From the sequence record LR745206.1: 64,000 bases of DNA; one strand, given 5' to 3'. The notes below the pieces were generated by a model. The model searched no databases. It saw nothing but the letters and a program-made list of their open reading frames with translations, and was not told where the DNA came from. The translations under genes were made by a program, and so were the position numbers. Shown here in pieces: positions 7,000 to 44,490 of this stretch (positions are counted from its first letter, which is position 1; each line of letters begins with the position of its first letter).

Positions 7000-7026
7000 A
7001 AAACCCAACTTAATCAGTTGGGTTTT
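7000..7026. terminator. bidirectional intrinsic terminator
   Basis: AAAACCCAACT-TAATC-AGTTGGGTTTT between convergent genes. Confidence 0.75.
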
Positions 7027-7237
7027 CAATTTTAAATATATTTTCGATTTTTCGTTTCCTTATTAGATTTGTAGTTCTAACAAATCCATAATAACTATTA
7101 TTAACCATTTTTGTTGCATATCTACTCTTCATTGATAATGAATTGAAGCTACTTGATAATGTTGAAATACTTTCACTAACAACATAGGGCATCCAAACTA
7201 GACCAGCTTCCAATTTATTTGATTTCTTTCCCAACAT
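7010..7237 (-). CDS. small protein: major capsid C-terminal-like fragment plus RxxKIxxIF tag
   Basis: GKKSNKLEAGLVWMPYV..MKSRYA resembles gp23-family GYKGPNEMDAGIYYAPYV..FKTRYG; ends IRKRKIENIF. Confidence 0.7.
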   Translation of the reverse strand: MLGKKSNKLEAGLVWMPYVVSESISTLSSSFNSLSMKSRYATKMVNNSYYGFVRTTNLIRKRKIENIFKIENPTD

Positions 7238-18055: not shown

Positions 18056-18363
18056 ATGTTGTTTGTATAAAGGGATATAAAACATTGAAAGTTGGTTCCT
18101 CTTATCAGATAAAGGGTCGTGGAAATCTAACATATAATGCTGATCCAGAAGTTGGTGGTAAAAAAGGTCAAGGATATTGTATAGAGGATGGTATGTATGG
18201 GTCTTATAGTGGTAGAACCGATTGGTACCGATTGCCTTATAATGAAAGGATTAAGTGGTATTATTTTACCGAAAAAGAAATGGGTGATTACTTTATAACA
18301 GATAATGAAAATCATATAATATATTTAAGAGATAGAAAAATTAATAGTATAATAAATGATTGA
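18031..18363 (+). CDS. tagged hypothetical protein
   Basis: ends YLRDRKINSIIND. Confidence 0.7.
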   Translation: MEDRWDVINVVCIKGYKTLKVGSSYQIKGRGNLTYNADPEVGGKKGQGYCIEDGMYGSYSGRTDWYRLPYNERIKWYYFTEKEMGDYFITDNENHIIYLRDRKINSIIND

Positions 18364-18976
18364 TACTTTTGGAATAAAGCCTTTGGACTTAAACAACGTT
18401 GTTTGTCATTCTGGTGGTGCAGAGGGATCTGATACCCATTGGGAGAATATTGGAGAAGAGTTTGGTGTTATAACCAAAGCCTATTCACATAAAACACCAA
18501 AACACCAATCAAAAAATAAAGTTGAAATATCTGATGAAGATTATCGAGAAGGTGTTGTTGAGGTTAATAAGGCAAATAAATTTCTTAATAGATATGGTAT
18601 ACATAAATATATGAATATGTTAGCTCGTAATTGGGCTCAAGTTAAATATTCTAATGAGATATTCGCAATAGGATATATTGTTAAAGTTGGTGAAAGAAAT
18701 ACTAAGGGGTACTATAACAGAGGTAAATATGATATGGTTGATGGTGGAACTGGATATGCTGTACAGATGGCTATAAATAATCAAAAACCAGTTTATGTTT
18801 TTGACCAAAAACAAGATAATTGGTTTAGATGGTCATATGCTTCGTTTTCATTTATTGAAATGGAGAATACACCAAAAATAAATTTTCAAAATTTTGCTGG
18901 TATTGGTACACGACAAATTGGTAAAAATGGAATAGAATCTATAAGAAAGGTATATAATAAAACATTTGTGATATGA
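18356..18976 (+). CDS. SLOG-superfamily (YspA/DprA-related) protein
   Basis: HSGGAEGSD, GGTGYAV..A, KPVYVFD, FAGIGTR. Confidence 0.6.
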   Translation: MIDTFGIKPLDLNNVVCHSGGAEGSDTHWENIGEEFGVITKAYSHKTPKHQSKNKVEISDEDYREGVVEVNKANKFLNRYGIHKYMNMLARNWAQVKYSNEIFAIGYIVKVGERNTKGYYNRGKYDMVDGGTGYAVQMAINNQKPVYVFDQKQDNWFRWSYASFSFIEMENTPKINFQNFAGIGTRQIGKNGIESIRKVYNKTFVI

Positions 18977-19371
18977 TAATAAGTTTTGATTTTGATGGTA
19001 CGTTAGATGATGAATTTGGTGGAGTGCCAATTAATTTTCAAAAAAAGGATATTCAGTTATTAGCCAAACAATATATAGAAGAAGGACATGATGTGATGAT
19101 ACTCACTAAGCGATTTGGGCCTGATCATTCTGATAAAGGTCTTGGTAATGAGCATCTAATTGTATTTGAATTGGCAAAAGAATTAGGAATAGAAAAGGTT
19201 TATTTCACTAACCGTGTGATGAAATTTTCTTATATAATCAGGTTATCAATAGATATGCACTTTGAGAATGATGATTATGAAGTTGAGTTGATAAATCAAG
19301 CTTGTGTAGAAAGGGGGCATAATTGTTTAGTAATACCAGTAGAGGAAAAAAATTGGAGAAGTTTATTATGA
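18973..19371 (+). CDS. HAD-superfamily phosphatase
   Basis: ISFDFDGTLD motif I, LTKR motif II, HFEND motif IV. Confidence 0.75.
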   Translation: MIISFDFDGTLDDEFGGVPINFQKKDIQLLAKQYIEEGHDVMILTKRFGPDHSDKGLGNEHLIVFELAKELGIEKVYFTNRVMKFSYIIRLSIDMHFENDDYEVELINQACVERGHNCLVIPVEEKNWRSLL

Positions 19372-19949: not shown

Positions 19950-20292
19950 GAATGAATTCATAGATTGGATAAAGGAATTGGGATTTTCTAAAACTTGGGA
20001 AACATATGATGGTGAGTATTCAATAAAACCTGGTGGTGATGGTATATTTGATCCTAAGATTTATTTTACTACTTCTTATGAAGAATCAGAAATTAAAATT
20101 GGTATACATTATGCTAAAATGAATGGTACGATGTCATATGGATCTAATATAGGATATTTCAATATTAGTCAAATAGGTGAATTTGAAAAAATAATTATAG
20201 TGCATAAACTTATTGAATATTTTGATGAAGTTCCAATTGGATTCAAAAAGTATTTAAGAGATTCTAAAATTAAAGACATTTTAGGGTATTAA
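19939..20292 (+). CDS. tagged hypothetical protein
   Basis: ends YLRDSKIKDILGY. Confidence 0.7.
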   Translation: MMNENEFIDWIKELGFSKTWETYDGEYSIKPGGDGIFDPKIYFTTSYEESEIKIGIHYAKMNGTMSYGSNIGYFNISQIGEFEKIIIVHKLIEYFDEVPIGFKKYLRDSKIKDILGY

Positions 20293-20302
20293 TATATAAA
20301 TA

Positions 20303-20785
20303 ATGATTAGTAAATTTAGTGATATGGTAAATGAAAATATATCTTCAAAATTCAAATTGGGTATTGATGTGCATGGTGTTGTAGATGCTATGCCAGAGTT
20401 TTTTGCATTCTTGACGAATGCTTTTATTAAAAATGGTGGTGAGGTTCATATAATTACTGGTGGATCTTGGACTAAACAAATGGAATCAGAGATAATTTCT
20501 TATGGTATAAAATTCACACATGTTTTCTCTGTTTATGATCATCTTGTTGAATCTGATGCTGAATCTACTGGTAAAGTACAATTTCCTGATGGTACTATAC
20601 AAAATAAATTTAAGGATGGTGATTGGGACTTGGTTAAAGCTAACTATTGTCGAGATAATGGTATAACATTCCATATTGATGATACCTTGGCTTATAATGA
20701 GTTTTTCACAACCCCTTTTGCTAGACTTTGGACTCACAGTAATAAACCAAAAGCATCTCATAAGGATGTTCGACATATGGATTAA
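20303..20785 (+). CDS. HAD-like protein, putative head-packaged
   Basis: IDVHGVVD, ITG, K, HIDD motifs; start MISKFSDMVNE; late motif 20289-20298. Confidence 0.65.
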   Translation: MISKFSDMVNENISSKFKLGIDVHGVVDAMPEFFAFLTNAFIKNGGEVHIITGGSWTKQMESEIISYGIKFTHVFSVYDHLVESDAESTGKVQFPDGTIQNKFKDGDWDLVKANYCRDNGITFHIDDTLAYNEFFTTPFARLWTHSNKPKASHKDVRHMD

Positions 20786-20829: not shown

Positions 20830-21189
20830 ATGCAAGAAAAAACCGAATTAGACTTAAATAACCCTATCTTTGCCGTTTATGTAAATGTTGGTGGTTTATC
20901 TAGACAGAGAGCTGAGGAAACAATCCAACACTTATCTAAAACTATGGATTGTCATAGTAATGTAACTATGTGGTTTTTCGGATGTGGTAATCTTGGTGAA
21001 AATCAAGAGACAAAAGTGGAGTGTGTTTATGATGGGATGTTGAGAAATAGAAATTCAGAATTAGTTGACTTAATAAAAGAAATAAATACAAGAGTTGATA
21101 TTTTATCAAATTCTAAAGATTTTGAAGATTTTAAATTAAATGTGAGAAATTGGAGATTGGGAGAATTACTAAAAAATGGCGATAACTAA
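20830..21189 (+). CDS. portal clip-like fragment plus tag
   Basis: YVNVGGLSRQRAEETIQHLSKTM versus T4 gp20 [23 protein letters not shown]; ends VRNWRLGELL. Confidence 0.7.
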   Translation: MQEKTELDLNNPIFAVYVNVGGLSRQRAEETIQHLSKTMDCHSNVTMWFFGCGNLGENQETKVECVYDGMLRNRNSELVDLIKEINTRVDILSNSKDFEDFKLNVRNWRLGELLKNGDN

Positions 21190-21556
21190 GAACAAAATAC
21201 AATTATTAGATAATATTCTATCTGTTGAAAAAGAGATGGAAATTGACTATTATTCCTATTGGGATAGTTACGGGTATGATGATTATTATGAAAATGATTA
21301 TTACGAAGATGATAGAGATCCTTGTTGGGGCTATGTTGAATCAATAGAACCTAGTTATGATTTGATAACCAAAGGTCGTGGTAGATTTACATACCAAAAC
21401 CATGCTAGAGTTCTTGGTAAGATGATAGATATGGATACTATTTATTCTAGAGAAGTGTTGAGAGAGAGAAAAATAGATCAAATTCTTGGATTATTGGCAC
21501 CAACTTATATACCGAAAGCAACTATTGGTGATTTTTTTCCAAAAAATAATAATTAA
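21176..21556 (+). CDS. Tyr/Asp-rich tagged protein
   Basis: YDDYYENDYYEDD tract; LRERKIDQILG. Confidence 0.7.
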   Translation: MAITKNKIQLLDNILSVEKEMEIDYYSYWDSYGYDDYYENDYYEDDRDPCWGYVESIEPSYDLITKGRGRFTYQNHARVLGKMIDMDTIYSREVLRERKIDQILGLLAPTYIPKATIGDFFPKNNN

Positions 21557-22774
21557 ATGAAAGTAGAAATATTTAAAGGTAATTGGACACTTGATGATGT
21601 AAGAAACAACACTGATAAGATTTTTATCTTTGGTGATAATAATGCTAGAATAGGAAAAGGTGGTCAAGCTATAATAAGAGATTTACCGAATACTATTGGT
21701 ATAAGGACCAAAAAAGGACCAAGTAAAAAAGCAGCTGCTTTTTACAAAGATTCTGAATTTGAATCAAACTCCAAGAATATATTAGAGGATATATTAGATA
21801 TTAAAAAAGAAGCTGTTGATGGATCAACTATTGTTTTTTCTAATGGTGGATATGGTACAGGGTTGGCTTCTTTGAGAGAGAAGGCACCTAAGACATTTGA
21901 ATATCTTTGTTTTTTATTAAGAGAACACTTCAACTTTAATAATGAAACTGGTAAAAAATGGCATAAGATACCTGGTCATAGAGAAATAAAAGAGGGGAAG
22001 TATGTTGATTTTGATAATAACAACACAAACATATTAAAACCAATTAATAATAGTTATTTTAAATCAGATTTCTTAGAGAAAGGATTAAATACAACATATG
22101 AATTAATTAAGAGTGAGTGTAAAGTCGCATTTACCTCTGATAAAAAGTATAAAAATAATGATATATTGATATTTACTTTTATTGGTAAGAACTATTTGGT
22201 TTGTAGAGTAATTGATTCATATGATATAGATTTGATGTTAAATGATTATAAGTGGTATTCATTTGAGGGTTATGATAAGAGTTTTAATATAGCTGGTCCT
22301 GATAATTTGCTAACTAATGAGAAAGAATATAAACAACAAACACATTTTCAATACATTTGTACACTAGATGATAGGGGTAATATGGTATATAAGAATGATA
22401 TATTTGCTGGTGAGGATAAACCAAAGGTAGATATTGATAAAATTAAAAAAAAAGTAGTTGGTGAAACTATACAAAATAAAAATCAAGATGATATGAGTGA
22501 AGTTACTAATAGTGAAATACTTGAGATTCTAAAAAGAATAGAATCTAAAATGGATAAGAAAAGATTCAAAAATCCATTCCGTAGAAAAACAATCGAAGAA
22601 TTATTATCAGAAAAAGGGTTGGTTGGTAGTTTTAATAAAATAGATTCCCCACTATCTAATAATAAATATGTATTAATTAGTGATAATGGATCATTTTATT
22701 ATTTCAATTTTAATAAAGGTTTATTATTTAATAATATTGAAATAATTTTGATATCCGATAAAAGTCTGATATAA
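21557..22774 (+). CDS. protein with N-terminal macro-like domain
   Basis: FIFGDN..GKGGQA.IR..PN.IGIRTK and GYGTGLA resemble macro-fold phage domains. Confidence 0.4.
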   Translation: MKVEIFKGNWTLDDVRNNTDKIFIFGDNNARIGKGGQAIIRDLPNTIGIRTKKGPSKKAAAFYKDSEFESNSKNILEDILDIKKEAVDGSTIVFSNGGYGTGLASLREKAPKTFEYLCFLLREHFNFNNETGKKWHKIPGHREIKEGKYVDFDNNNTNILKPINNSYFKSDFLEKGLNTTYELIKSECKVAFTSDKKYKNNDILIFTFIGKNYLVCRVIDSYDIDLMLNDYKWYSFEGYDKSFNIAGPDNLLTNEKEYKQQTHFQYICTLDDRGNMVYKNDIFAGEDKPKVDIDKIKKKVVGETIQNKNQDDMSEVTNSEILEILKRIESKMDKKRFKNPFRRKTIEELLSEKGLVGSFNKIDSPLSNNKYVLISDNGSFYYFNFNKGLLFNNIEIILISDKSLI

Positions 22775-22988: not shown

Positions 22989-23058
22989 GGTTGGGTGACC
23001 GAGAGATAGGTGGAGACTCGCAAAGTCTTTTACGGTGGTTCAAATCCATCCCCAACCT
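22989..23058 (+). tRNA. tRNA-Cys(GCA), non-canonical
   Basis: acceptor GGTTGGG/CCCAACC, D stem ACC/GGT, anticodon stem GAGAC/GTCTT with loop TCGCAAA, T arm GGTGG-TTCAAAT-CCATC, U73 discriminator, no encoded CCA. Confidence 0.85.
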
Positions 23059-23071
23059 CTAATTTATATTT

Positions 23072-23620: not shown

Positions 23621-23644
23621 TTTGATTATTTTTCCTTATATTTG
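23614..23644 (+). promoter_or_regulatory. Bacteroidota-type -33/-7 promoter
   Basis: TTTG(23614)-N19-TATATTTG(23637-23644). Confidence 0.7.
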
Positions 23645-23647
23645 TGT

Positions 23648-24286
23648 ATGGCAAAATACGACACATACAGATATATTTATCCTCCACGCCCAAAAAATGC
23701 GATACCAACTACTGACCTAGATTTCTGGGATGGTGGTTCTTTGATTGCTCAGCCAAAACTAAATGGTTCCAATTGTGTTATTTTCACTAATGGTGATAAA
23801 CATGTTGTTATGAATCGCCACAACCAGAGATTAACCAATTTTAGATTAACCGATCTAGAAATTAAAGATATGTACCGTGGTACAGGTGAGTGGATGGTTA
23901 TTAATGGTGAGTATATGAATAAAAATAAATCAGACGAGACTAATCAACCATTTAATCACAAGTTTGTGATTTTTGATATACTTACTTATGATGGTGAATA
24001 TTTAGTTGGTAAAACCTTCCAAGAAAGAGTAGAAGTGCTCGATGTGTTATATGGTCAAGTTAAGTGTGAGAAGGACTATTTATATAAAATTTCCGAAAAT
24101 ATCTATCGTGTTAAATCTTATGATGTAGGATTTACTGATCTATTTAATGAGTTAACACCTATTGATATGATAGAAGGTCTTGTCATGAAACGTAAGAATG
24201 CTCGACTTGAACTTGGAACATCTGAGTTAAATAATGTGAAGAGCCAGATTAAGTGTAGAAAGGCTACTAAAAACTATAAATTCTAA
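23648..24286 (+). CDS. minimal ATP-dependent DNA/RNA ligase (adenylation domain only)
   Basis: QPKLNG motif I, GEYM III, FVIFDIL IIIa, EGLVMK IV, KCRK V; no OB domain. Confidence 0.75.
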   Translation: MAKYDTYRYIYPPRPKNAIPTTDLDFWDGGSLIAQPKLNGSNCVIFTNGDKHVVMNRHNQRLTNFRLTDLEIKDMYRGTGEWMVINGEYMNKNKSDETNQPFNHKFVIFDILTYDGEYLVGKTFQERVEVLDVLYGQVKCEKDYLYKISENIYRVKSYDVGFTDLFNELTPIDMIEGLVMKRKNARLELGTSELNNVKSQIKCRKATKNYKF

Positions 24287-24325: not shown

Positions 24326-24895
24326 ATGGAAAAGTTCTCCAAACTAAAACCAAAAGATGAATTTGCTGATTCTAAAGATAAAGTTCTTTATGATGGTGAA
24401 CATTATAGTATAGTTGAGTATGAAGATTGGAGTATAATATTAGAAAAGGATGCTGTTGTTTGTATTCCTTATCTGATTGAAACCAATCAATTTATCATAA
24501 GACATGAATACATACCCCCATTTAAATATGCTGATGGTCAAGAATATCACATAACTGTCTTGAGTGGTGGTATAGAAAGAGGAGAAACAGTAGAAAAGGC
24601 TTTGGTTAGAGAACTTGAAGAAGAAGCTGGTATTGTTTTGAGAGAAGATTATCAAATAGATGATGATTTAAAACCATTATTTATCAGTAAGAGTAACACA
24701 AATAAATACCATCCATTTATTTTACCATTGAATGAGAAGGACTATCATGAGGTAGTTGCTAAAGGTGATGGTTCTAAAGCTGAATCTTTGAGTAAGTCAG
24801 TTAAAGTAGATGCTAAATATATAGATTCTTTGAATGTTTCTGATTTGATTACTGATTACATGCTACTTAAATTAAAAGAATACCTTAATGTATGA
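24326..24895 (+). CDS. NUDIX hydrolase
   Basis: Nudix box GGIERGETVEKALVRELEEEAGI; late motif 24296-24305. Confidence 0.9.
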   Translation: MEKFSKLKPKDEFADSKDKVLYDGEHYSIVEYEDWSIILEKDAVVCIPYLIETNQFIIRHEYIPPFKYADGQEYHITVLSGGIERGETVEKALVRELEEEAGIVLREDYQIDDDLKPLFISKSNTNKYHPFILPLNEKDYHEVVAKGDGSKAESLSKSVKVDAKYIDSLNVSDLITDYMLLKLKEYLNV

Positions 24896-31523: not shown

Positions 31524-34500
31524 ATGTGGGTATTTAATAATGATTATAATAAATGGTCTTCTTCTGATGATAGTCTTTTGAAAGATAATTATGACTTTTT
31601 AAAACAAGAATTATCATCTGTTAGATTCTATTCAAAATGTTTGAGTGGTGCTACCTATTTACCGATGAATAGCTTAGATAATATCTATGATATATTGGGA
31701 GAGTATGAGCCAAGAAATTGGTATATTGGATTGATTGGATCTCCTTATAGTAATTCACTTATACCACCACAGAATGCAACAGAGATTACAGAATCCTCAT
31801 CATATGATTACTATAACAAATATCTAACAGAGTATGGATTAACTCTAAAGAATCTATTTACACCTGATAGATTGATAAAAGATTCTATTAAAAATTATAT
31901 CTATGTTGATGTAGCAACAACAGAACAGTTATTTGATTTATATCAACCAGTTATTAATAGAGTTATAGATGGTTTTAGATTGAAGGATGGTCACAGGATT
32001 TTGATAAAAGATCAAAAATCAACTGAGGTATTACCAAATACTACTAATCCAGATACTTATTTTCAGGGTAATTATACTGTTATCCAAAATTTAGGAACAA
32101 CAATAGAATATGAATACTTCAATAATGAAAATGGTATATATGTCTATAATAATAAATTACTTACTAAAGAAACCGATCTAAATGAATATGTTGATTGTGT
32201 TAGGTTTAGTGTTGTTGTTAAGATAGGAACTAGTAATAGAGAGAAACAATTTCACTTATCTAGGTTGTTGAATGGATATTATCCAACATCTTCCTTAAAT
32301 CAGCCTATGGAGTTTGTCGAGAAGCATAATTGGTTATTAAGAAACAGAGTAGATTATAATAATCTATTTGAAATAAATTATTATGATGTTATAAAACATG
32401 GTACTCAATCGTATAATCTTAATGGTATCACATATAGTGTTCCAGAGAGAACTATATCCGTTGGTGAGTTTGGTGTGATATTAAATAACCAAGAAGATGT
32501 TTCTAATATTATTAGTAATAAATACAAAGTTAATTTGAGAGGTATATCACAAACTTCTAAATATTATTGGGTTTGTGGAGATAGTGGTGTTTTATTGAAG
32601 GTAAGAAAACATGATTTCAATATAGAAAGAATAGAGATTGATTGTAATTGCCCAAGAAATTTAACAATAACAAACCTTAACTCAATATCATTCTTTAATG
32701 ATCAAAGAGGTGTCGCTGTTGGAGATTTAAATACCATTTTAATAACAATAGATGGTGGTAATACATGGGATAAAATTGGTATACCTGATTTTGATGCTTA
32801 TTATTATAATAAGGTTACTTATTATAATCCTAATAGCTTTTTTATCGGTGGTAATTCTGGTGTATTCATAGAATTTAAAAATGATATTTCTGGATGGACA
32901 GCTTATAAAAGAAGGATATCTAGATTTATTGATGATGAGGATGAATATTTATTAGTTGATAATATTAATGATATTTTTTATACAAATATTAATACTTGGG
33001 GATTAAGTTTCTCTTATGGTACACAATCTATAGCTACAGAGAAAGAGTTATTGTTTATTGTAACTGATGATAGTAAAATAATAGCACATGATATTAATGA
33101 TTCAATACCGGGCTTTGATTTCGTCTATTTGGAACTACCAAATAATTATGGTGATATAAGAAATATAGTTAGAAGAGAATCTACAAATGATTTCTATTTC
33201 ACTGGTATAGATGAGAGTAATGGGGATGTTGGTTTATTTTCTACAACACTTAATAATTTTAATAATTTGGGTGTTGATAATGAATATTCAAACACTATAA
33301 TATCAATTTTTCCGGCCACACATGAATCTGATAATTATCCAAATGAGACATTTGATTATTTGGGACAGGATATTATTATATGCGGTAATGAATCTTTATT
33401 AAAAAGTTCAACATATAGCACAACATTTAATTTTGAGTCTCTTGATGATAATTTTGAGTCAAGATTGAAGTCTAAGATGTTATTTTTGGATTATGATATG
33501 GGATCAAAATTGAATTTCTTTACTGATTCTGGTCAATATAGATTACCAAATTCATTAGAGTTTAATGGTGGTAGTTTCTCAGTTGGATCATATTTGGAAT
33601 TTGAACCATTAATATATGGAGCAACTTCACCAAGTTTCATGACACAATCAGAAGTTAGTTGGTTTGATTATTGGTCAGATAGATACAAAACATTTGAGTT
33701 TTATACAAACACATCACCATTAGATGAATCAACAAAAGTTTTATTATCTTCTAATTTTTCCTATTCTGCTACACAATCAGAATTAATAATATCATCAATC
33801 ACATCCAATCTGTATGATATACAGAATTTGGCTCCTAATATTTATGACTCAAGTTTGAGTAGATTTAATGGGGTTGGTATGACAGCTATATCAGCGCCAT
33901 CATCATCATATGATTTATATTTGTATGATTATTTAATGATAGCTAAAGTACCAATAGGATATGTTACCGAAGTTGGTGATGTTATGAATTTGGAAAGCTC
34001 TGTTGTTAATGGTGAATTTGTGATTAATAAAATAGCTACAATAAGTGGTAGTAAATACCTATATATGTTTAGTGAGTTTAATCAAAATATTATAACCGAA
34101 TTATCAACAACAACATATTCTGTTACTTTAACAAATTTGAATAATTATTTAGATATATATGAATTGGTTGATAGATTTAATATACATCCAATTTCTAATG
34201 GATATGAATTATCTGCTGTTGATAATTTTAATTATTTCTTATATCTAGATTTTTTAAATGGAGCAGTTAACACTTATAATAATTGGGATGTTGATACATC
34301 ATTTATAAATAGCTCTCCTGTTATACATTTTGATATTACATCCTCATCATCTCCCTATTCTGCTAGAACAAGTCTTGGTGACAATTTAATAGAAAGTCCA
34401 ATTGTTTATGGTGTTGATGTTATTAAATTTAGTTATCAAGCTAGAAAATCAGGACCATCTTTTCCAATAATAACCGATCCGGGAAATTCAATTGAGGGAG

Positions 34501-37274
34501 GTTATTCAAATGGTACATACTCTACTATAAAGGTACAGGGTTACTCTTTGAATACATTATCTTGGGTGGATATACAGAATTATACAATGCCTTTGAGTGG
34601 ATTTTTAACAGCTAATACCGGAGTTCAAGCTACAATTCCGATTAGTGGTAATTATAACCAATTTAGATTCAATTTATTTGAGGGTACTGGTACATATTCA
34701 TACAATACTACTAGTGGTCCCCCATTCTTTGTACCAATTGTTGCTACAGCATCAAATTCGGTCTATATTAAAATAGATGATATAAAATTGATTAGTAGTA
34801 GTCCATTAACTATTGAACCAAACTCTTATGGTTTATCTTATAGTAATACTATTACTTATGAATTAAATCCATTGTTTAATAATCTAACATCATATTATAA
34901 CTTAGCAACCAATGTTATTGTTAATGGTGATTATAAAACTATGTCATATACTGACGGATTCCTAAAATTTGGATATACCCCAACTTATAATATTCTTGAT
35001 TACCTAGAATCTATAAATGTTATTGGTGATCCTAACCCAGTTTTTTATGGTGATAAAGAATATTATGCAATGCCTGATTATAGAGGAATACCTTTACAGG
35101 GTGTTGGTAGTATAAATGATAGCATTGCTTATATCGATTATAATGGTGTTACTTATTCTAACACAACTGGTAATAAACTACTATTTGGTAAAGATTTGAA
35201 ATTGGAATGGGAAAGTATATTTATCAATACATTTGTTGATATTAACCTATATGATTCGGTGACATATTCTATACCTTCTTCATCAACAGAGAGGTTATTA
35301 GTTATGAAAAAATATTATAATGAAAAAGATGATGTTTATGTTATAGAGTTTCATAAAAAATTAAATTTCACACTTGGTAATCCATTGTATTTTATTGATA
35401 TAATATCTAGAAGAAAGTTACATCAAATAAGTAGTGATTTACAAGAGTTGAATAATATACAAAGAGATAAATTAAAAGTAACTGATGGTATCATTATAGG
35501 GTCATCTTTTAATAGTTATGAACCAGAGTTAAACTTTAAAATACCTACTGATTCATACTCCAAGGTATTACTTTCTGATGTTGATACTTTACAGGAGTTA
35601 AGTGCAATATTCTATATTGATTATAAGAATGAATTAGCTATGAATATTACTAGATTGGAAAGAGAGTATAACATACCTATTTTAAATACTTCTAATTTTG
35701 GTGGTAAGTTATTTATTTCTTGTACTGAGAAGCACGATCTTAGAACTGGTGATGGTGTTGTGTTAGATTTTAATGGTGCTACTGGATCATCACAAGAATT
35801 AAATCAACAATATTTTGGTTATCATCCGGTTATTGTTGTTAACCAATATAATTTTTATTTGGATATTCCTTATGGAACAACACCATTTGTTGGTAATGAT
35901 ACTGGATTTGTTAGATATACCAAAAAGGATCCATTCTTAAATTACCAACCAATTGATATAATTGATGTTGGTGTTGATAAGAAGGGTAAAAAATCAATTG
36001 AGTTATCCATTGATAATTTAAAATTAACAGATGATGTTTATAGTTTAACTGATGTTGATTTTAATAAATTTAGATTTAGGTTAGTTGATGGGTTAAATGT
36101 TGAACAATTAGCTATTCAATTCCCTTGGATACTTGAAGCTGAAATATCTGGAGCTGTATTAGGATTGAATAATGATGGATTGGTCTGGTATAAAGGTATT
36201 TGGGAATGTGGTAGATGGTTTGGTGGTAGTTGGATATCAGGTAGTTGGATATCAGGGGATTGGTATGATGGTAAGTGGTTCTCAAAAACCATTAAGGATA
36301 ATTACATCTCAGTAGAAATTGATGATAAATCATCAAATAGTTTACAATCAACTTGGTTTGGTGGTAGGTGGTATAAAGGTACCTGGGATAATGGATTGTG
36401 GGTTAATGGTAGATGGTATGATGGTGATTGGAACAATGGTACGTGGTTCAAGGGTATTTGGAATGATGGTACATGGAATGATGGTGTATTTGGTGGTGGT
36501 GTTTGGGTACTTGGTACTTGGAATAATGGTATATTTAATACTGATAATGAGCCAGCTTATTGGTTAGATGGTACTTGGTATGGTGGTGATTTTGAAAATG
36601 GTATGTGGTATGATGGTTCTTTTGAGTCTAAGAATACAGAGTCTAGATTTGGTGTTAAGTCATATAACAGCAGAACTTCTACTTGGCATGGTGGTAAGTG
36701 GATAAGTGGTAGTTTCCACTCTAAACTTAATATAAATGATGATGGTGAGTATGATGTATCTGATGTACATAAATACTCAATTTGGAAAACAGGTTCTTGG
36801 TTTAGTGGTGATTTTTATGGTGGTATAGCTTATAATATGGACTTTAAATCAGGTATTTGGCATGGTGGTATATTAGAGGATATTCAAGTAATTGGGTTTG
36901 GATCTGATGGTGTTGGTGAGAACTTCTTCGCTTTGAATGGTATATTTAAATTTAATCTTGGTGATGAAATTAATATAATTGATAATCAAATAGGTAATAC
37001 ATACTCTAATGACTTTGGTAGTAATTCAGAACCAGGTAGATATACTATTCTATATACAGTTGAGGATAATATCAATAATTGGACAAAAGTTTATGTAAAT
37101 AGAACAATAACTTATGATGTTAATGCTCCAGTTGATTTAGGTTTGAGATTGGTTAGTAGATTTAGATTCTGTAATTGGAAATCAGGTATTTGGACAAATG
37201 GTCTTTTTGATAGTGGATTATGGGAAGGTGGTATCTGGTACAATGGTGTATTTGGTGATGCTACTTGGATGTAA
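31524..37274 (+). CDS. 1916-aa virion/tail protein with BNR-like propeller and W/G pentapeptide repeats
   Basis: GVAVGDLNTILITIDGGNTW BNR-like motif; long GxWxx repeat tract from about 36180. Confidence 0.7.
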   Translation: MWVFNNDYNKWSSSDDSLLKDNYDFLKQELSSVRFYSKCLSGATYLPMNSLDNIYDILGEYEPRNWYIGLIGSPYSNSLIPPQNATEITESSSYDYYNKYLTEYGLTLKNLFTPDRLIKDSIKNYIYVDVATTEQLFDLYQPVINRVIDGFRLKDGHRILIKDQKSTEVLPNTTNPDTYFQGNYTVIQNLGTTIEYEYFNNENGIYVYNNKLLTKETDLNEYVDCVRFSVVVKIGTSNREKQFHLSRLLNGYYPTSSLNQPMEFVEKHNWLLRNRVDYNNLFEINYYDVIKHGTQSYNLNGITYSVPERTISVGEFGVILNNQEDVSNIISNKYKVNLRGISQTSKYYWVCGDSGVLLKVRKHDFNIERIEIDCNCPRNLTITNLNSISFFNDQRGVAVGDLNTILITIDGGNTWDKIGIPDFDAYYYNKVTYYNPNSFFIGGNSGVFIEFKNDISGWTAYKRRISRFIDDEDEYLLVDNINDIFYTNINTWGLSFSYGTQSIATEKELLFIVTDDSKIIAHDINDSIPGFDFVYLELPNNYGDIRNIVRRESTNDFYFTGIDESNGDVGLFSTTLNNFNNLGVDNEYSNTIISIFPATHESDNYPNETFDYLGQDIIICGNESLLKSSTYSTTFNFESLDDNFESRLKSKMLFLDYDMGSKLNFFTDSGQYRLPNSLEFNGGSFSVGSYLEFEPLIYGATSPSFMTQSEVSWFDYWSDRYKTFEFYTNTSPLDESTKVLLSSNFSYSATQSELIISSITSNLYDIQNLAPNIYDSSLSRFNGVGMTAISAPSSSYDLYLYDYLMIAKVPIGYVTEVGDVMNLESSVVNGEFVINKIATISGSKYLYMFSEFNQNIITELSTTTYSVTLTNLNNYLDIYELVDRFNIHPISNGYELSAVDNFNYFLYLDFLNGAVNTYNNWDVDTSFINSSPVIHFDITSSSSPYSARTSLGDNLIESPIVYGVDVIKFSYQARKSGPSFPIITDPGNSIEGGYSNGTYSTIKVQGYSLNTLSWVDIQNYTMPLSGFLTANTGVQATIPISGNYNQFRFNLFEGTGTYSYNTTSGPPFFVPIVATASNSVYIKIDDIKLISSSPLTIEPNSYGLSYSNTITYELNPLFNNLTSYYNLATNVIVNGDYKTMSYTDGFLKFGYTPTYNILDYLESINVIGDPNPVFYGDKEYYAMPDYRGIPLQGVGSINDSIAYIDYNGVTYSNTTGNKLLFGKDLKLEWESIFINTFVDINLYDSVTYSIPSSSTERLLVMKKYYNEKDDVYVIEFHKKLNFTLGNPLYFIDIISRRKLHQISSDLQELNNIQRDKLKVTDGIIIGSSFNSYEPELNFKIPTDSYSKVLLSDVDTLQELSAIFYIDYKNELAMNITRLEREYNIPILNTSNFGGKLFISCTEKHDLRTGDGVVLDFNGATGSSQELNQQYFGYHPVIVVNQYNFYLDIPYGTTPFVGNDTGFVRYTKKDPFLNYQPIDIIDVGVDKKGKKSIELSIDNLKLTDDVYSLTDVDFNKFRFRLVDGLNVEQLAIQFPWILEAEISGAVLGLNNDGLVWYKGIWECGRWFGGSWISGSWISGDWYDGKWFSKTIKDNYISVEIDDKSSNSLQSTWFGGRWYKGTWDNGLWVNGRWYDGDWNNGTWFKGIWNDGTWNDGVFGGGVWVLGTWNNGIFNTDNEPAYWLDGTWYGGDFENGMWYDGSFESKNTESRFGVKSYNSRTSTWHGGKWISGSFHSKLNINDDGEYDVSDVHKYSIWKTGSWFSGDFYGGIAYNMDFKSGIWHGGILEDIQVIGFGSDGVGENFFALNGIFKFNLGDEINIIDNQIGNTYSNDFGSNSEPGRYTILYTVEDNINNWTKVYVNRTITYDVNAPVDLGLRLVSRFRFCNWKSGIWTNGLFDSGLWEGGIWYNGVFGDATWM

Positions 37275-37302
37275 TTTGATTTTATAAATTAATATATAGA
37301 CT

Positions 37303-37713
37303 ATGATTAAAAAGTATTTACAATTCATAAAAGAAGCTGATGAGGTTGAGGAAATAACTGATACTGAAACTAAAGATGATAACTCTGATATATCTCATGA
37401 TTCTAAATTTACCGAAATTAAAGATGAGGTTAAATTAATGATAGAGAATACAATAGAGAAAAGTGGTGGTGAATTTGAATCATTTGTTGATTCCTTTATT
37501 AAAAATCCAGAAGATGTTAAGGTCGAGGGATTCATAAACGACTCGGATATATATGATTTCTATTTAAAATGGAGAAATGATATTGATGAGGTTTTAAATG
37601 ATGTTAAGTTTTTTGATGAAGTGCCAACTGAGATGAATGCTTTTGGTTTATACGAATATGTTATAAAAGGAACTGAAAAAGCTTTTAGTGAAATAGTTAA
37701 AACAATCGGTTAA
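37303..37713 (+). CDS. acidic protein, putative head-packaged
   Basis: MIKKYLQFIKE start; late motif 37289-37298. Confidence 0.7.
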   Translation: MIKKYLQFIKEADEVEEITDTETKDDNSDISHDSKFTEIKDEVKLMIENTIEKSGGEFESFVDSFIKNPEDVKVEGFINDSDIYDFYLKWRNDIDEVLNDVKFFDEVPTEMNAFGLYEYVIKGTEKAFSEIVKTIG

Positions 37714-43083: not shown

Positions 43084-43374
43084 ATGAAATATTTAAGAAA
43101 ATATAATGAATCAAATGGAGAGCAAGATTTAGATTTTGTTTTAGCTAAGATTAAGGAAGAATTTCCTATTGATAAGGTTAAAGAAACTTATGATAAAGAA
43201 GTTGATGAGTGGTCAGAAGATTACACTAATAGTGGTAATGGTGAGGCACAAGACGTTATCTTAAATCAAATGATTGGATGGTTCGAGTTGAAACATTCTA
43301 GCCTTAGTGATGAGTTATTTGAAGAAGTTTATAATAAACTACAAGAGGAATATGAATTCCTAAACATTGATTAA
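43084..43374 (+). CDS. acidic small protein, putative head-packaged
   Basis: MKYLRKYNES start. Confidence 0.65.
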   Translation: MKYLRKYNESNGEQDLDFVLAKIKEEFPIDKVKETYDKEVDEWSEDYTNSGNGEAQDVILNQMIGWFELKHSSLSDELFEEVYNKLQEEYEFLNID

Positions 43375-43406: not shown

Positions 43407-43880
43407 ATGACTCAAAGTTCTAAAGAAGATATTTTTAAAAAATGGGCACCTATTATAGAATCTATGGGTGTTACTGGATCAAAAGCAGATTGGATGTCTC
43501 ATTATGCTGAAATGCACTCTATCAATGAGAATAATATACAAATATCATCAACACAATCTACTTCTAATTTTCCAAATTTGTTACCAATCGCTAAAAAGAT
43601 TGCAGCTCAAACAGTTGGACTAAATTTAGTAGCTGTTAAACCAATTGGTGGTAATTCAACTGATGAGTTAGAAAGAATAAAAAGTGAGATTAAATCTGAA
43701 AACCGCGATAGAAAAATCGATTCTATTACAGATGATAAAGAATTTGAGGAAATGAAGGTTGAGGATCATCCAGACTATGAAACTGGTTTACCTAGTGGTA
43801 AATTATTTTACATGGATTATCAATATGGATCTACACCAACACATAAGAAGACAAGAAGAAGTAAAAAGAAGAAGAAATGA
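43407..43880 (+). CDS. major capsid N-terminal-like fragment with internal tag
   Basis: MTQSSKEDIFKKWAPIIE versus T4 gp23 MTIKTKAELLNKWKPLLE; LVAVKPIGG..PSGKLFYMDYQYG; NRDRKIDSI inserted. Confidence 0.75.
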   Translation: MTQSSKEDIFKKWAPIIESMGVTGSKADWMSHYAEMHSINENNIQISSTQSTSNFPNLLPIAKKIAAQTVGLNLVAVKPIGGNSTDELERIKSEIKSENRDRKIDSITDDKEFEEMKVEDHPDYETGLPSGKLFYMDYQYGSTPTHKKTRRSKKKKK

Positions 43881-44131
43881 AGAAACTTAAAATGCAAAAA
43901 GATTATTGGTTTCCTAGTCCAGATTATGTTAATAGATTTGGTCGTAAAAGAAGTATTGCTAAAATATTTGACCTTGAGTATGACGAATCTGATTTAGTAA
44001 ATTCCTCACAAATTCATTGGAGTAGTACCACTGCTCAACCAAGAATGAAATTTGTAATACCTATTGGTGATATGAAAGATAAACCAAGTATTGCTAAAAG
44101 AATCAAGGATTTGATAAAAAAATTCAAATAA
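43877..44131 (+). CDS. portal-like fragments flanking a tag
   Basis: QKDYWFPS, GRKRSIAKIF, RMKFVIPIGDM..KDLIKKFK. Confidence 0.6.
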   Translation: MKKLKMQKDYWFPSPDYVNRFGRKRSIAKIFDLEYDESDLVNSSQIHWSSTTAQPRMKFVIPIGDMKDKPSIAKRIKDLIKKFK

Positions 44132-44160: not shown

Positions 44161-44490
44161 ATGATTAAGATTTATTTAATTTGTGCTGAAATAGGTGGTG
44201 AGAAGATGTATAAAATAGGTTATACAAAAAGAACAATTGAACAAAGAATAAAGGAATTTAAGACTGGTAATGCGTCCGAGTTCACTATAATAGATTCTTT
44301 TCAATCAGATTGGGGTACTAAAATAGAGGCACAATTACATAAGAGATTTAATCATAAAAAGGTTAATGGTGAGTGGTTTAAGTTAGATGAATCTGATATA
44401 AATAAGTTTCAAGATATGTGTAGTTTAATACATAATAATTTAGAAATTGTCTCTAAAACGACATATTATTTAGATAGAGGAGACTTTTAA
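44161..44490 (+). CDS. GIY-YIG-like T5orf172/MUG113 nuclease
   Basis: YKIGYTK..RIKE..IEAQLHKRF..GEWF. Confidence 0.8.
   Translation: MIKIYLICAEIGGEKMYKIGYTKRTIEQRIKEFKTGNASEFTIIDSFQSDWGTKIEAQLHKRFNHKKVNGEWFKLDESDINKFQDMCSLIHNNLEIVSKTTYYLDRGDF

Follow-up and report, generated by a model that had tools for sequence, protein, structure and literature searches.

A small, tagged and conserved protein of the uncultured phage LR745206.1 resembles the clip of the phage's own portal and is a candidate ligand of its large terminase

The stretch of DNA analysed here (the window, 64,000 nucleotides) matches bases 248001-312000 of LR745206.1 letter for letter; this unannotated record holds the 634,780-bp genome of an "uncultured phage". 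The window is AT-rich (~29% GC), densely coding and free of N. Positions are those of the window unless they are preceded by the word record. At 20830-21189 lies an open reading frame (ORF) for a small protein that is probably clip-like in nature, that is, similar to the clip of the gp20-type portal proteins, and whose C-terminal helix carries a variant of a tag found throughout the genome. The original prediction had read this ORF as a segment of a T4-type portal clip fused to a tag and ending in GELL. The ORF is present as described there, with a different end: the protein runs five residues further, to ...VRNWRLGELLKNGDN. Its parts are the following.

20830-21189, plus strand: stand-alone protein of 119 aa, ATG to TAA, in which a portal-clip-like domain precedes a tag-like C-terminal helix
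20845-20871, plus strand: N-terminal motif ELDLNNPIF (residues 6-14), the most conserved part of the family, leading into the predicted strand β1
20872-20946, plus strand: clip-like strand, tip and helix (residues 15-39, AVYVNVGGLSRQRAEETIQHLSKTM), equivalent to residues 284-308 of T4 gp20 and 280-304 of the phage's own portal
20893-20919, plus strand: GLSRQRAEE (residues 22-30), identical to residues 287-295 of the own portal and spanning the equivalents of T4 N291, M292, R295 and K296
20965-21030, plus strand: predicted β2-β3 hairpin (residues 46-67, NVTMWFF...TKVECVY), from the AlphaFold2 models and the Foldseek alignments
21037-21108, plus strand: sequence-variable helix α2 (residues 70-93), from the AlphaFold2 model and the order of the elements
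21121-21180, plus strand: C-terminal helix α3 (residues 98-117, FEDFKLNVRNWRLGELL), with the tag-like RNWRLGELL at 21145-21171

The protein belongs to a family of 49 close clusters and at least 220 distant clusters at 50% identity, nearly all of whose members are 100-140 aa long; in a deep profile search of 1.84 billion representatives, the best 150 of these clusters were all of 49-190 aa. Because it is conserved to this extent, and syntenic, the family is under selection. In the NPIF motif P12 is invariant and I13 and F14 are kept in more than 90% of the family; in α3, residues F98, D100, F101, K102, R106 and R109 are invariant among the close relatives, and R106 is present in more than 90% of the broad family. 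Scans of ORF 20830 with Pfam, PHROG and NCBIfam returned no family, and neither Pfam nor PHROGs found a recurrent family among 105 members. In the collection of phage records a member was found only in LR745206.1 and in its 642-kb sister, and none was detectable in the other huge phages or in the Lak phages. Apparent domain fusions among the longer members were rejected, as they appear to be frameshifted or chimeric gene calls. The idea of a fragment "fused" to a tag was not borne out either: the clip-like part and the tag are both integral elements of an old, conserved family of proteins of ~110 aa. Two readings of the ORF as a portal gene were also discarded. It does not encode a portal protein, failing the PF07230 and other profile tests, having 119 aa compared with ~500-600 aa arranged in wing, stem, clip and crown, and lying outside the head module; and it is not part of a split or interrupted portal gene, since an intact portal of 577 aa is encoded elsewhere in the genome.

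The genome-wide protein comparisons drew on the 1,213 ORFs with 50 aa or more in LR745206.1. Searches of the genome's ORFs revealed a T4-type packaging and head module, with TerL, portal and MCP at record 178-202 kb. The genes that matter here, including that of the large terminase (TerL) and that of the major capsid protein (MCP), are these.

record 168066-171953, minus strand: sheath, T4-type module
record 178254-180386: TerL, T4-type, E 5e-50 against gp17
record 193127-194860: the phage's own portal (P0316), 577 aa, E 9e-36 against the gp20 profile, PF07230
record 200752-202434: MCP, T4-type module

PF07230 is present in P0316 and in all its relatives. The own portal is closest to the portals of other huge phages (462-735 kb), and its more distant relatives occur in the Lak megaphages of Prevotella, phage PAU, Tenacibaculum phage PTm1 and the cyanomyoviruses.

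ORF 20830 (at record 268.8 kb) is located ~75 kb from this portal gene. When a hidden Markov model (HMM) of its family was run with hmmsearch against all 1,213 ORFs, an unbiased search, the portal was the top non-self match (E 1e-4), and the two proteins carry an exact 9-mer at the homologous position (FTIPIK-GLSRQRAEE-QIGQL in the portal, VYVNVG-GLSRQRAEE-TIQHL in the ORF). GLSRQRAEE is the longest exact peptide that ORF 20830 has in common with any of the 1,212 other ORFs, the next longest having 6 residues, and in a control with 150 ORFs exact peptides of at least 9 residues were common only to true paralogs or to shared tags. The codons of the 9-mer differ synonymously between the two genes at four of the nine positions, which argues that the identity is maintained by selection on the protein and does not reflect a recent copy; recent gene conversion was rejected on the same ground. 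Judged from these alignments, the resemblance to the own portal is stronger than that to T4 gp20. The motifs of the megaphage portals and of the T4 portal align column for column in a MAFFT alignment made without reference to the ORF, and in the sister genome an S-to-P change is found in both the portal (GLPRQRAEE) and the small protein (NLPRQQVDQ). As a separate observation, the portal stretch that scored best with the family HMM was a non-collinear one, residues 146-191 of the own portal (record ~193562-193699) against ORF residues 26-66, in which KYQEYFEKIYNKFGFADNITAWNMM...IAIEIIYDD of the portal is set against ...F.Y.NIT.W...TKIECIY.G of the ORF; in masked hhalign comparisons this stretch (portal 146-191 or 162-191) reached 3.4%, just above noise.

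For the comparison with T4, authentic gp20 was obtained by translating gene 20 of AF158101.6. The gp20 string quoted in the original prediction is found there exactly, at residues 286-308, and its ungapped alignment with ORF residues 17-39 has the nine identities that were named (Y, V, G, A, E, Q, H, T and M; 9/23). BLASTP of the ORF against T4 gp20 recovered the same register unprompted, with 28.1 bits and a pairwise E of 5e-5. When the family profile was compared by hhalign with ~330 unrelated or reversed phage ORFs, gp20 came first with a score of 28.6, and a reversed decoy reached 26.7; on the level of single sequences, then, the match to gp20 appears only marginal. With profiles on both sides, the 49 close relatives aligned with T4-like portals at a probability of 39-50% (score 35.5), the 105 diverse relatives aligned with the same portals at 65% (score 37.2), and these 105 relatives aligned with T4-like and megaphage portals together at 93% (E 3.4e-7, score 51.5). 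The reversed-profile nulls scored 11-17, with probabilities below 1%, so the true scores were 3-4 times as high, and the register was constant throughout (ORF 15-39 against portal 280-304, T4 284-308). These two-sided comparisons indicate a portal resemblance that is clearly non-random. HMM searches of Pfam and of the PDB, and the best 150 matches from the library of 1.84 billion proteins, yielded no portal.

The clip of T4 gp20 comprises residues 279-358, which form three β-strands and helix α6 (Sun et al. 2015, PMC4493910). This exposed region outside the capsid is where gp17 attaches and, at a later stage, the neck (PMC4493910). At its tip N291, M292, R295 and K296 contact gp17, and their mutation abolishes packaging (PMC4493910); in addition, a 24-residue gp20 peptide covering residues 288-311 binds gp17 and inhibits T4 DNA packaging in vitro, according to the summary of that work in PMC4493910. 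The statement that the ORF matches the clip region, where terminase docks, is correct, because the same study (PMC4493910) puts the matched gp20 segment in the clip, at the gp17-docking tip. In the ORF the equivalents of the gp17-contact residues are G22-L23 and Q26-R27, identical to G287-L288 and Q291-R292 of the own portal. Across the family (n=105) the tip positions read G/N (63/28), L/M (36/30), S/P (55/21) and then R, Q, R/K, A, E and E, so that the tip versions of the megaphage (G-L-S) and of T4 (N-M-P) are both represented.

AlphaFold2 gave the same confident model with the 49-sequence and the 105-sequence alignments (pLDDT 80 and 87.6), consisting of β1 (13-19), α1 (25-39), β2 (46-52), β3 (62-67), α2 (70-93) and α3 (98-117). 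The predicted three strands and one helix, which two further helices follow, match the published architecture of the clip (PMC4493910). From the order of the elements and the length of the alignments, β2 and β3 would be the remaining clip strands, α2 a possible counterpart of the stem helix α7 and α3 presumably the wing helix α8; on the sequence level the mapping of the hairpin yields a zero-confidence collinear alignment only. In a Foldseek search of viral structures the gp20-type portals ranked directly below an uncharacterised 324-aa marine-phage protein, with matches to Salmonella phage 38, Serratia phiMAM1, Escherichia Bp7, Bacillus SP-15 and entries named "portal vertex" or "capsid assembly". 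With the better model the portals were matched at a probability of 1.00 and a root-mean-square deviation (RMSD) of 3.5-5.3 Å over 78-84 columns. The best structural match overall was the marine-phage protein, BFVD entry A0A8D9FQH8 from an uncultured phage (E 2e-5, 23% identity, ~117-123 columns). A thioredoxin fold was considered and rejected: the protein has no CxxC, only C65 is conserved, and the Foldseek TM-score (~0.25) and probability (0.1-0.7) are low.

The C-terminal tag was defined here as R-[DEN]-x-[KR]-[ILV]-x-x-[ILV]-[ILV] within 25 residues of the C-terminus, with the consensus RDxKI[ND]xIL. The window has 10 matches, compared with 1.4 ± 1.3 in shuffled sequences; nine of the ten fall on real ORFs and eight lie within 6 residues of the stop.

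18328, 20257, 21145, 21461, 43704, 44984, 45354 (minus strand), 48617 and 60043: examples of tag positions in the window

The whole genome has 98 matches, 88 of them within 25 residues of the C-terminus and 60 at 0-2 residues from it. The tagged ORFs, with a median length of 110 aa, are otherwise unrelated, and the same enrichment is seen in related metagenomic loci. ORF 20830 has its tag, RNWRLGELL, 5 residues before the end, in a divergent form with W at an x position and R in place of K, and hhalign aligns its α3 with the C-termini of neighbouring tagged ORFs. Its C-terminal helix, as had been proposed, thus carries a variant of a real tag present in 88 ORFs of the genome. At the conserved positions the codons follow genome-wide usage and the substitutions are conservative (I/L/V, K/R, D/E/N). 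Because codon usage in the tag equals that of the genome, the tag is selected as a peptide and not as a nucleotide element, and a DNA or RNA element was rejected for this reason. A second recurrent terminal motif or paralog family, with the N-terminal sequence MK[YH]LK[TK][FY]E.., was seen in several small ORFs.

record 231845-232201, 624701-624997, 37041-37391 (minus strand), 450900-451175 (minus strand) and 364363-364824, and window 43084-43374: ORFs with MK[YH]LK[TK][FY]E..

A second portal piece, of a different sequence type, had been proposed at 43877, where two adjacent ORFs are found.

43407-43880, plus strand: 157 aa, paralog of the N-terminal ~118 residues of the own MCP
43877-44131, plus strand: 84-aa orphan whose residues 44-80 (…RMKFVIPIGDMKDKPSIAKRIKDLI) weakly align to residues 266-301 of the portal, the same clip site

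The ORF at 43877 exists, and its similarity to the portal is weak. Against the combined portal profile it reached an hhalign probability of 11% (E 0.003; KFVIPIGDM aligned with KFTIPIKGL), and BLASTP against the own portal gave an E of 0.035. It had no similarity to T4 gp20 (E 11) or to the family of ORF 20830, and no homologs in IMG/VR or in the phage records, the sister genome included; its portal claim is a weak one on these comparisons. The preceding ORF, 43407, is by contrast an unambiguous paralog of the MCP N-terminus: BLASTP against the own MCP gave an E of 7e-22 and 41% identity, the MCP was its top genome-wide phmmer match (E 9e-20), and it has the conserved stretch ...LLPxAxKIAAQTxGLxLVAVKP followed by an internal tag-like RDRKIDSI. 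It is conserved in LR756502.1 (55% identity) and weakly matches the N-terminus of T4 gp23. Further ORFs with head-protein fragments are found at window 7010-7237 (minus strand) and at record 93266-93520, 554784-555284 (minus strand) and 460435-460686 (minus strand). The pieces of the MCP that they match are C-terminal (494-539) or N-terminal (32-85 and 54-147), and one fragment ORF matches repeats of the scaffold region, in the 707-aa protein encoded between portal and MCP. In an all-against-all comparison, head-protein fragments dominate the list of small ORFs with a large paralog. With ORF 43407, ORF 7010-7237 and the further MCP and scaffold fragments, small ORFs copying parts of head proteins are thus a recurring feature of LR745206.1. 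Directly after the pair 43407 and 43877 lies a 109-aa ORF (44161-44490, plus strand) with a T5orf172/MUG113 (GIY-YIG-related) domain, which may be the remnant of a mobile endonuclease.

ORF 20830 itself is part of a syntenic non-structural block with the order PALP, small ORFs, HAD-like ORF, ORF 20830, tagged ORF of ~120 aa, DUF7831, ligase and NUDIX. This order is kept in relatives of ~50% identity, and distant family members occur in similar contexts. The neighbours and some other features of the window are listed here.

18356-18976, 18973-19371 and 20303-20785: a DprA-like or SLOG-like ORF and two HAD-like small ORFs
21176-21556, plus strand: next ORF, 126 aa, overlapping ORF 20830 by 14 nt, with the tag RERKIDQIL, syntenic in relatives
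21557-22774, plus strand: DUF7831-domain protein, E 1e-37
22989-23059, plus strand: the window's one tRNA-Cys (GCA), between the DUF7831 gene and the next ORF
23642-24286: RNA/DNA ligase-like ORF
24326-24895: NUDIX ORF
31524-37274, plus strand: very large ORF, 1,916 aa
53697-58472, minus strand: very large ORF, 1,591 aa

The occurrence together of DUF7831, DprA/SLOG-like, HAD-like, ligase-like and NUDIX ORFs points to a block of the nucleotide or RNA-repair type. As to expression, the octamer AATATATA is found within 60 nt upstream of 151 of 707 ORFs, compared with 9 expected, and stands ~20-35 nt before the genes for sheath, TerL, portal, scaffold-like protein and MCP (for example before record 168066 on the minus strand, 178254, 193127, 198546 and 200752; in the window, at ~20291-20298). 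This enrichment, together with its placement relative to these genes, makes it a probable phage promoter box; it is absent from the upstream spacer of ORF 20830 itself. A TAnnTTTG-like box (TATATTTG) is also enriched, ~8-fold, in upstream regions.

We favour the reading that ORF 20830 encodes a free-standing clip mimic that engages TerL, and we give this whole statement, TerL binding included, a probability of about 0.45. The first 70-90 residues (strand, tip loop, helix, β-hairpin and helix) would reproduce a gp20-type clip domain, and the protein would display the docking epitope as a soluble monomer or small oligomer. A copy of the docking tip of the phage's own portal probably binds the packaging motor or another clip partner, and as the genome encodes a complete T4-type packaging and head module, the presumed TerL partner exists. 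We infer that the protein binds the T4-type TerL of the phage or, possibly, some other ligand of the clip, for instance the neck protein. In this way it could affect packaging, by holding TerL away from proheads or DNA until the right time, or it could deliver TerL somewhere, and the role of the tag helix may be to tie the protein to a common partner of the tagged proteins. A broader proposal is rather doubtful in our view: that the megaphages of this clade encode small proteins, many of them tagged, that copy epitopes of their own virion proteins (the portal clip tip once, capsid pieces in at least four ORFs), the clip mimic being a natural regulator or inhibitor of terminase-portal docking.

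Several results weigh against a clip mimic that binds TerL. Significant sequence similarity to the portal is confined to 25 columns, and once the motif is masked the hhalign probability is at most 3.4%. PF07230 matched neither ORF 20830 nor any of the 105 family members at E≤1, the family HMMs returned only noise and no portal from the PDB sequences, and the deep profile search, which covered 1.84 billion representatives, had no full-length portal among its 150 best matches. The Foldseek E-values for the portals are modest (3e-3 to 0.1, with query-normalised TM-scores of ~0.4), and the best 50 matches in the PDB comprised no portal and weak generic α/β matches such as thioredoxins. Within the family, conservation of the tip residues is just 50-60%, below that of the N-terminal NPIF motif, and the co-variation of the small protein's tip with the portal, one S-to-P change in one sister genome, is suggestive only. 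When TerL is compared with the docking patch of T4 gp17, the alignment breaks at an insertion. Finally, the gene sits in a non-structural block, distant from the packaging genes.

The protein could instead be an unrelated small α/β adaptor with no packaging role, its function set by the NPIF motif and the tag and its likeness to the clip tip due to convergence or chance. The similarity spans just the 25 columns mentioned, a reversed decoy scores near gp20 on the single-sequence level, thioredoxin-like folds are among the Foldseek matches, the genomic context is non-structural and the most conserved residues lie outside the tip. However, such an adaptor would not be expected to carry an exact 9-mer of the own portal, unique in the genome, at the homologous site, nor to reach profile scores 3-4 times those of the reversed nulls, nor to have the portal as its top non-self match in an unbiased genome-wide search; moreover, portals recur with both models at a probability of 1.0, compared with 0.1-0.7 for the thioredoxins, whose CxxC is missing. 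We consider this explanation unlikely.

Two further explanations accept the likeness to the clip and assign it another purpose, and we regard both as improbable. The soluble mimic could be an immune decoy or bait that occupies or mis-assembles portal sensors such as Avs4, Avs11 or SpbK-like proteins and so shields the real portal. SpbK does bind the clip of YonE, the portal of SPbeta (PMC11984713), Avs4 and Avs11 sense portals (bioRxiv 10.64898/2026.01.04.697583), and the same genome has small ORFs that copy the capsid protein, another common immune trigger. Yet a portal-like ligand would be expected to activate these sensors, not to block them, and what Avs-type sensors recognise is an extended fold rather than a tip of 25 residues (bioRxiv 10.64898/2026.01.04.697583); this uncultured phage has no known host, sensor or interaction, and the neighbourhood contains no anti-defence-like locus. 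The protein could equally act on the portal itself, as an assembly factor or capping subunit that pairs with the edge of the clip strands and chaperones monomers, limits premature rings or plugs the clip. In the T4 dodecamer the clip β-sheet is built from strands of adjacent subunits and is the only region with inter-subunit main-chain hydrogen bonds (PMC4493910), and ORF 20830 encodes the same strand elements; but in the model of the monomer all three strands are already engaged in a closed intramolecular sheet, and the best match is to the solvent-exposed tip and helix, not to the exchanged strands.

If the clip mimic that we favour is real, it would represent a hitherto undescribed type of packaging regulator. 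It would offer a handle on the timing of packaging in phages of more than 600 kb, a ready template for probes or inhibitors of the terminase-portal interface, and an example of a virus that mimics a piece of its own structural protein. It also connects to the 88-member C-terminal tag and to the scattered capsid-protein fragments of LR745206.1. Should the protein turn out to be an immune decoy instead, this would be the first case of a phage encoding a mimic of a portal trigger. To our knowledge, tailed phages and herpesviruses all begin genome packaging with the docking of the terminase on the portal clip, and we are aware only of mutants and synthetic peptides as the means by which this docking has so far been probed.

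Among known systems, the gp20-type portal clip (PF07230; T4 gp20 279-358, PDB 3JA7) is alike in its strand-tip-helix motif, with 9 residues of ORF 20830 identical to the own portal and 9/23 to T4, and in its three strands and helix followed by a helix, the predicted structures superposing over ~80 residues. Portals of this type differ in being proteins of 520-580 aa with wing, crown and tunnel loop, none of which is present in the 119-aa protein; the latter is also ~15-20 residues shorter between the helix and the hairpin, and has a tag helix and an NPIF motif that are absent from portals. SpbK (with YonE), Avs4 and Avs11 use the same portal surface as a recognition element, but they are host sensors and not phage proteins. 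The interference proteins of phage satellites are small, bind a terminase subunit and redirect or block packaging, as does Ppi of the Staphylococcus aureus pathogenicity islands (SaPIs), which binds the small terminase of the helper phage. Unlike the ORF 20830 protein, they are not portal mimics, and they are encoded by the satellite and act against the helper phage; we know of no sequence or fold relationship between them and the ORF 20830 protein. In the literature we found no description of a phage-encoded clip decoy or of a free-standing phage clip domain. What is new here would therefore be the occurrence of a known domain as a separate protein, conserved and carrying a tag, and its closest precedent is the synthetic gp20 peptide 288-311, which has the same epitope as ORF residues 19-42. 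Since that peptide, as summarised in PMC4493910, binds the terminase and blocks packaging, it is a direct precedent for the action of the isolated segment; the peptide is a laboratory reagent, whereas in ORF 20830 the epitope belongs to a folded, conserved and genome-encoded protein, known from its sequence and from a predicted model.

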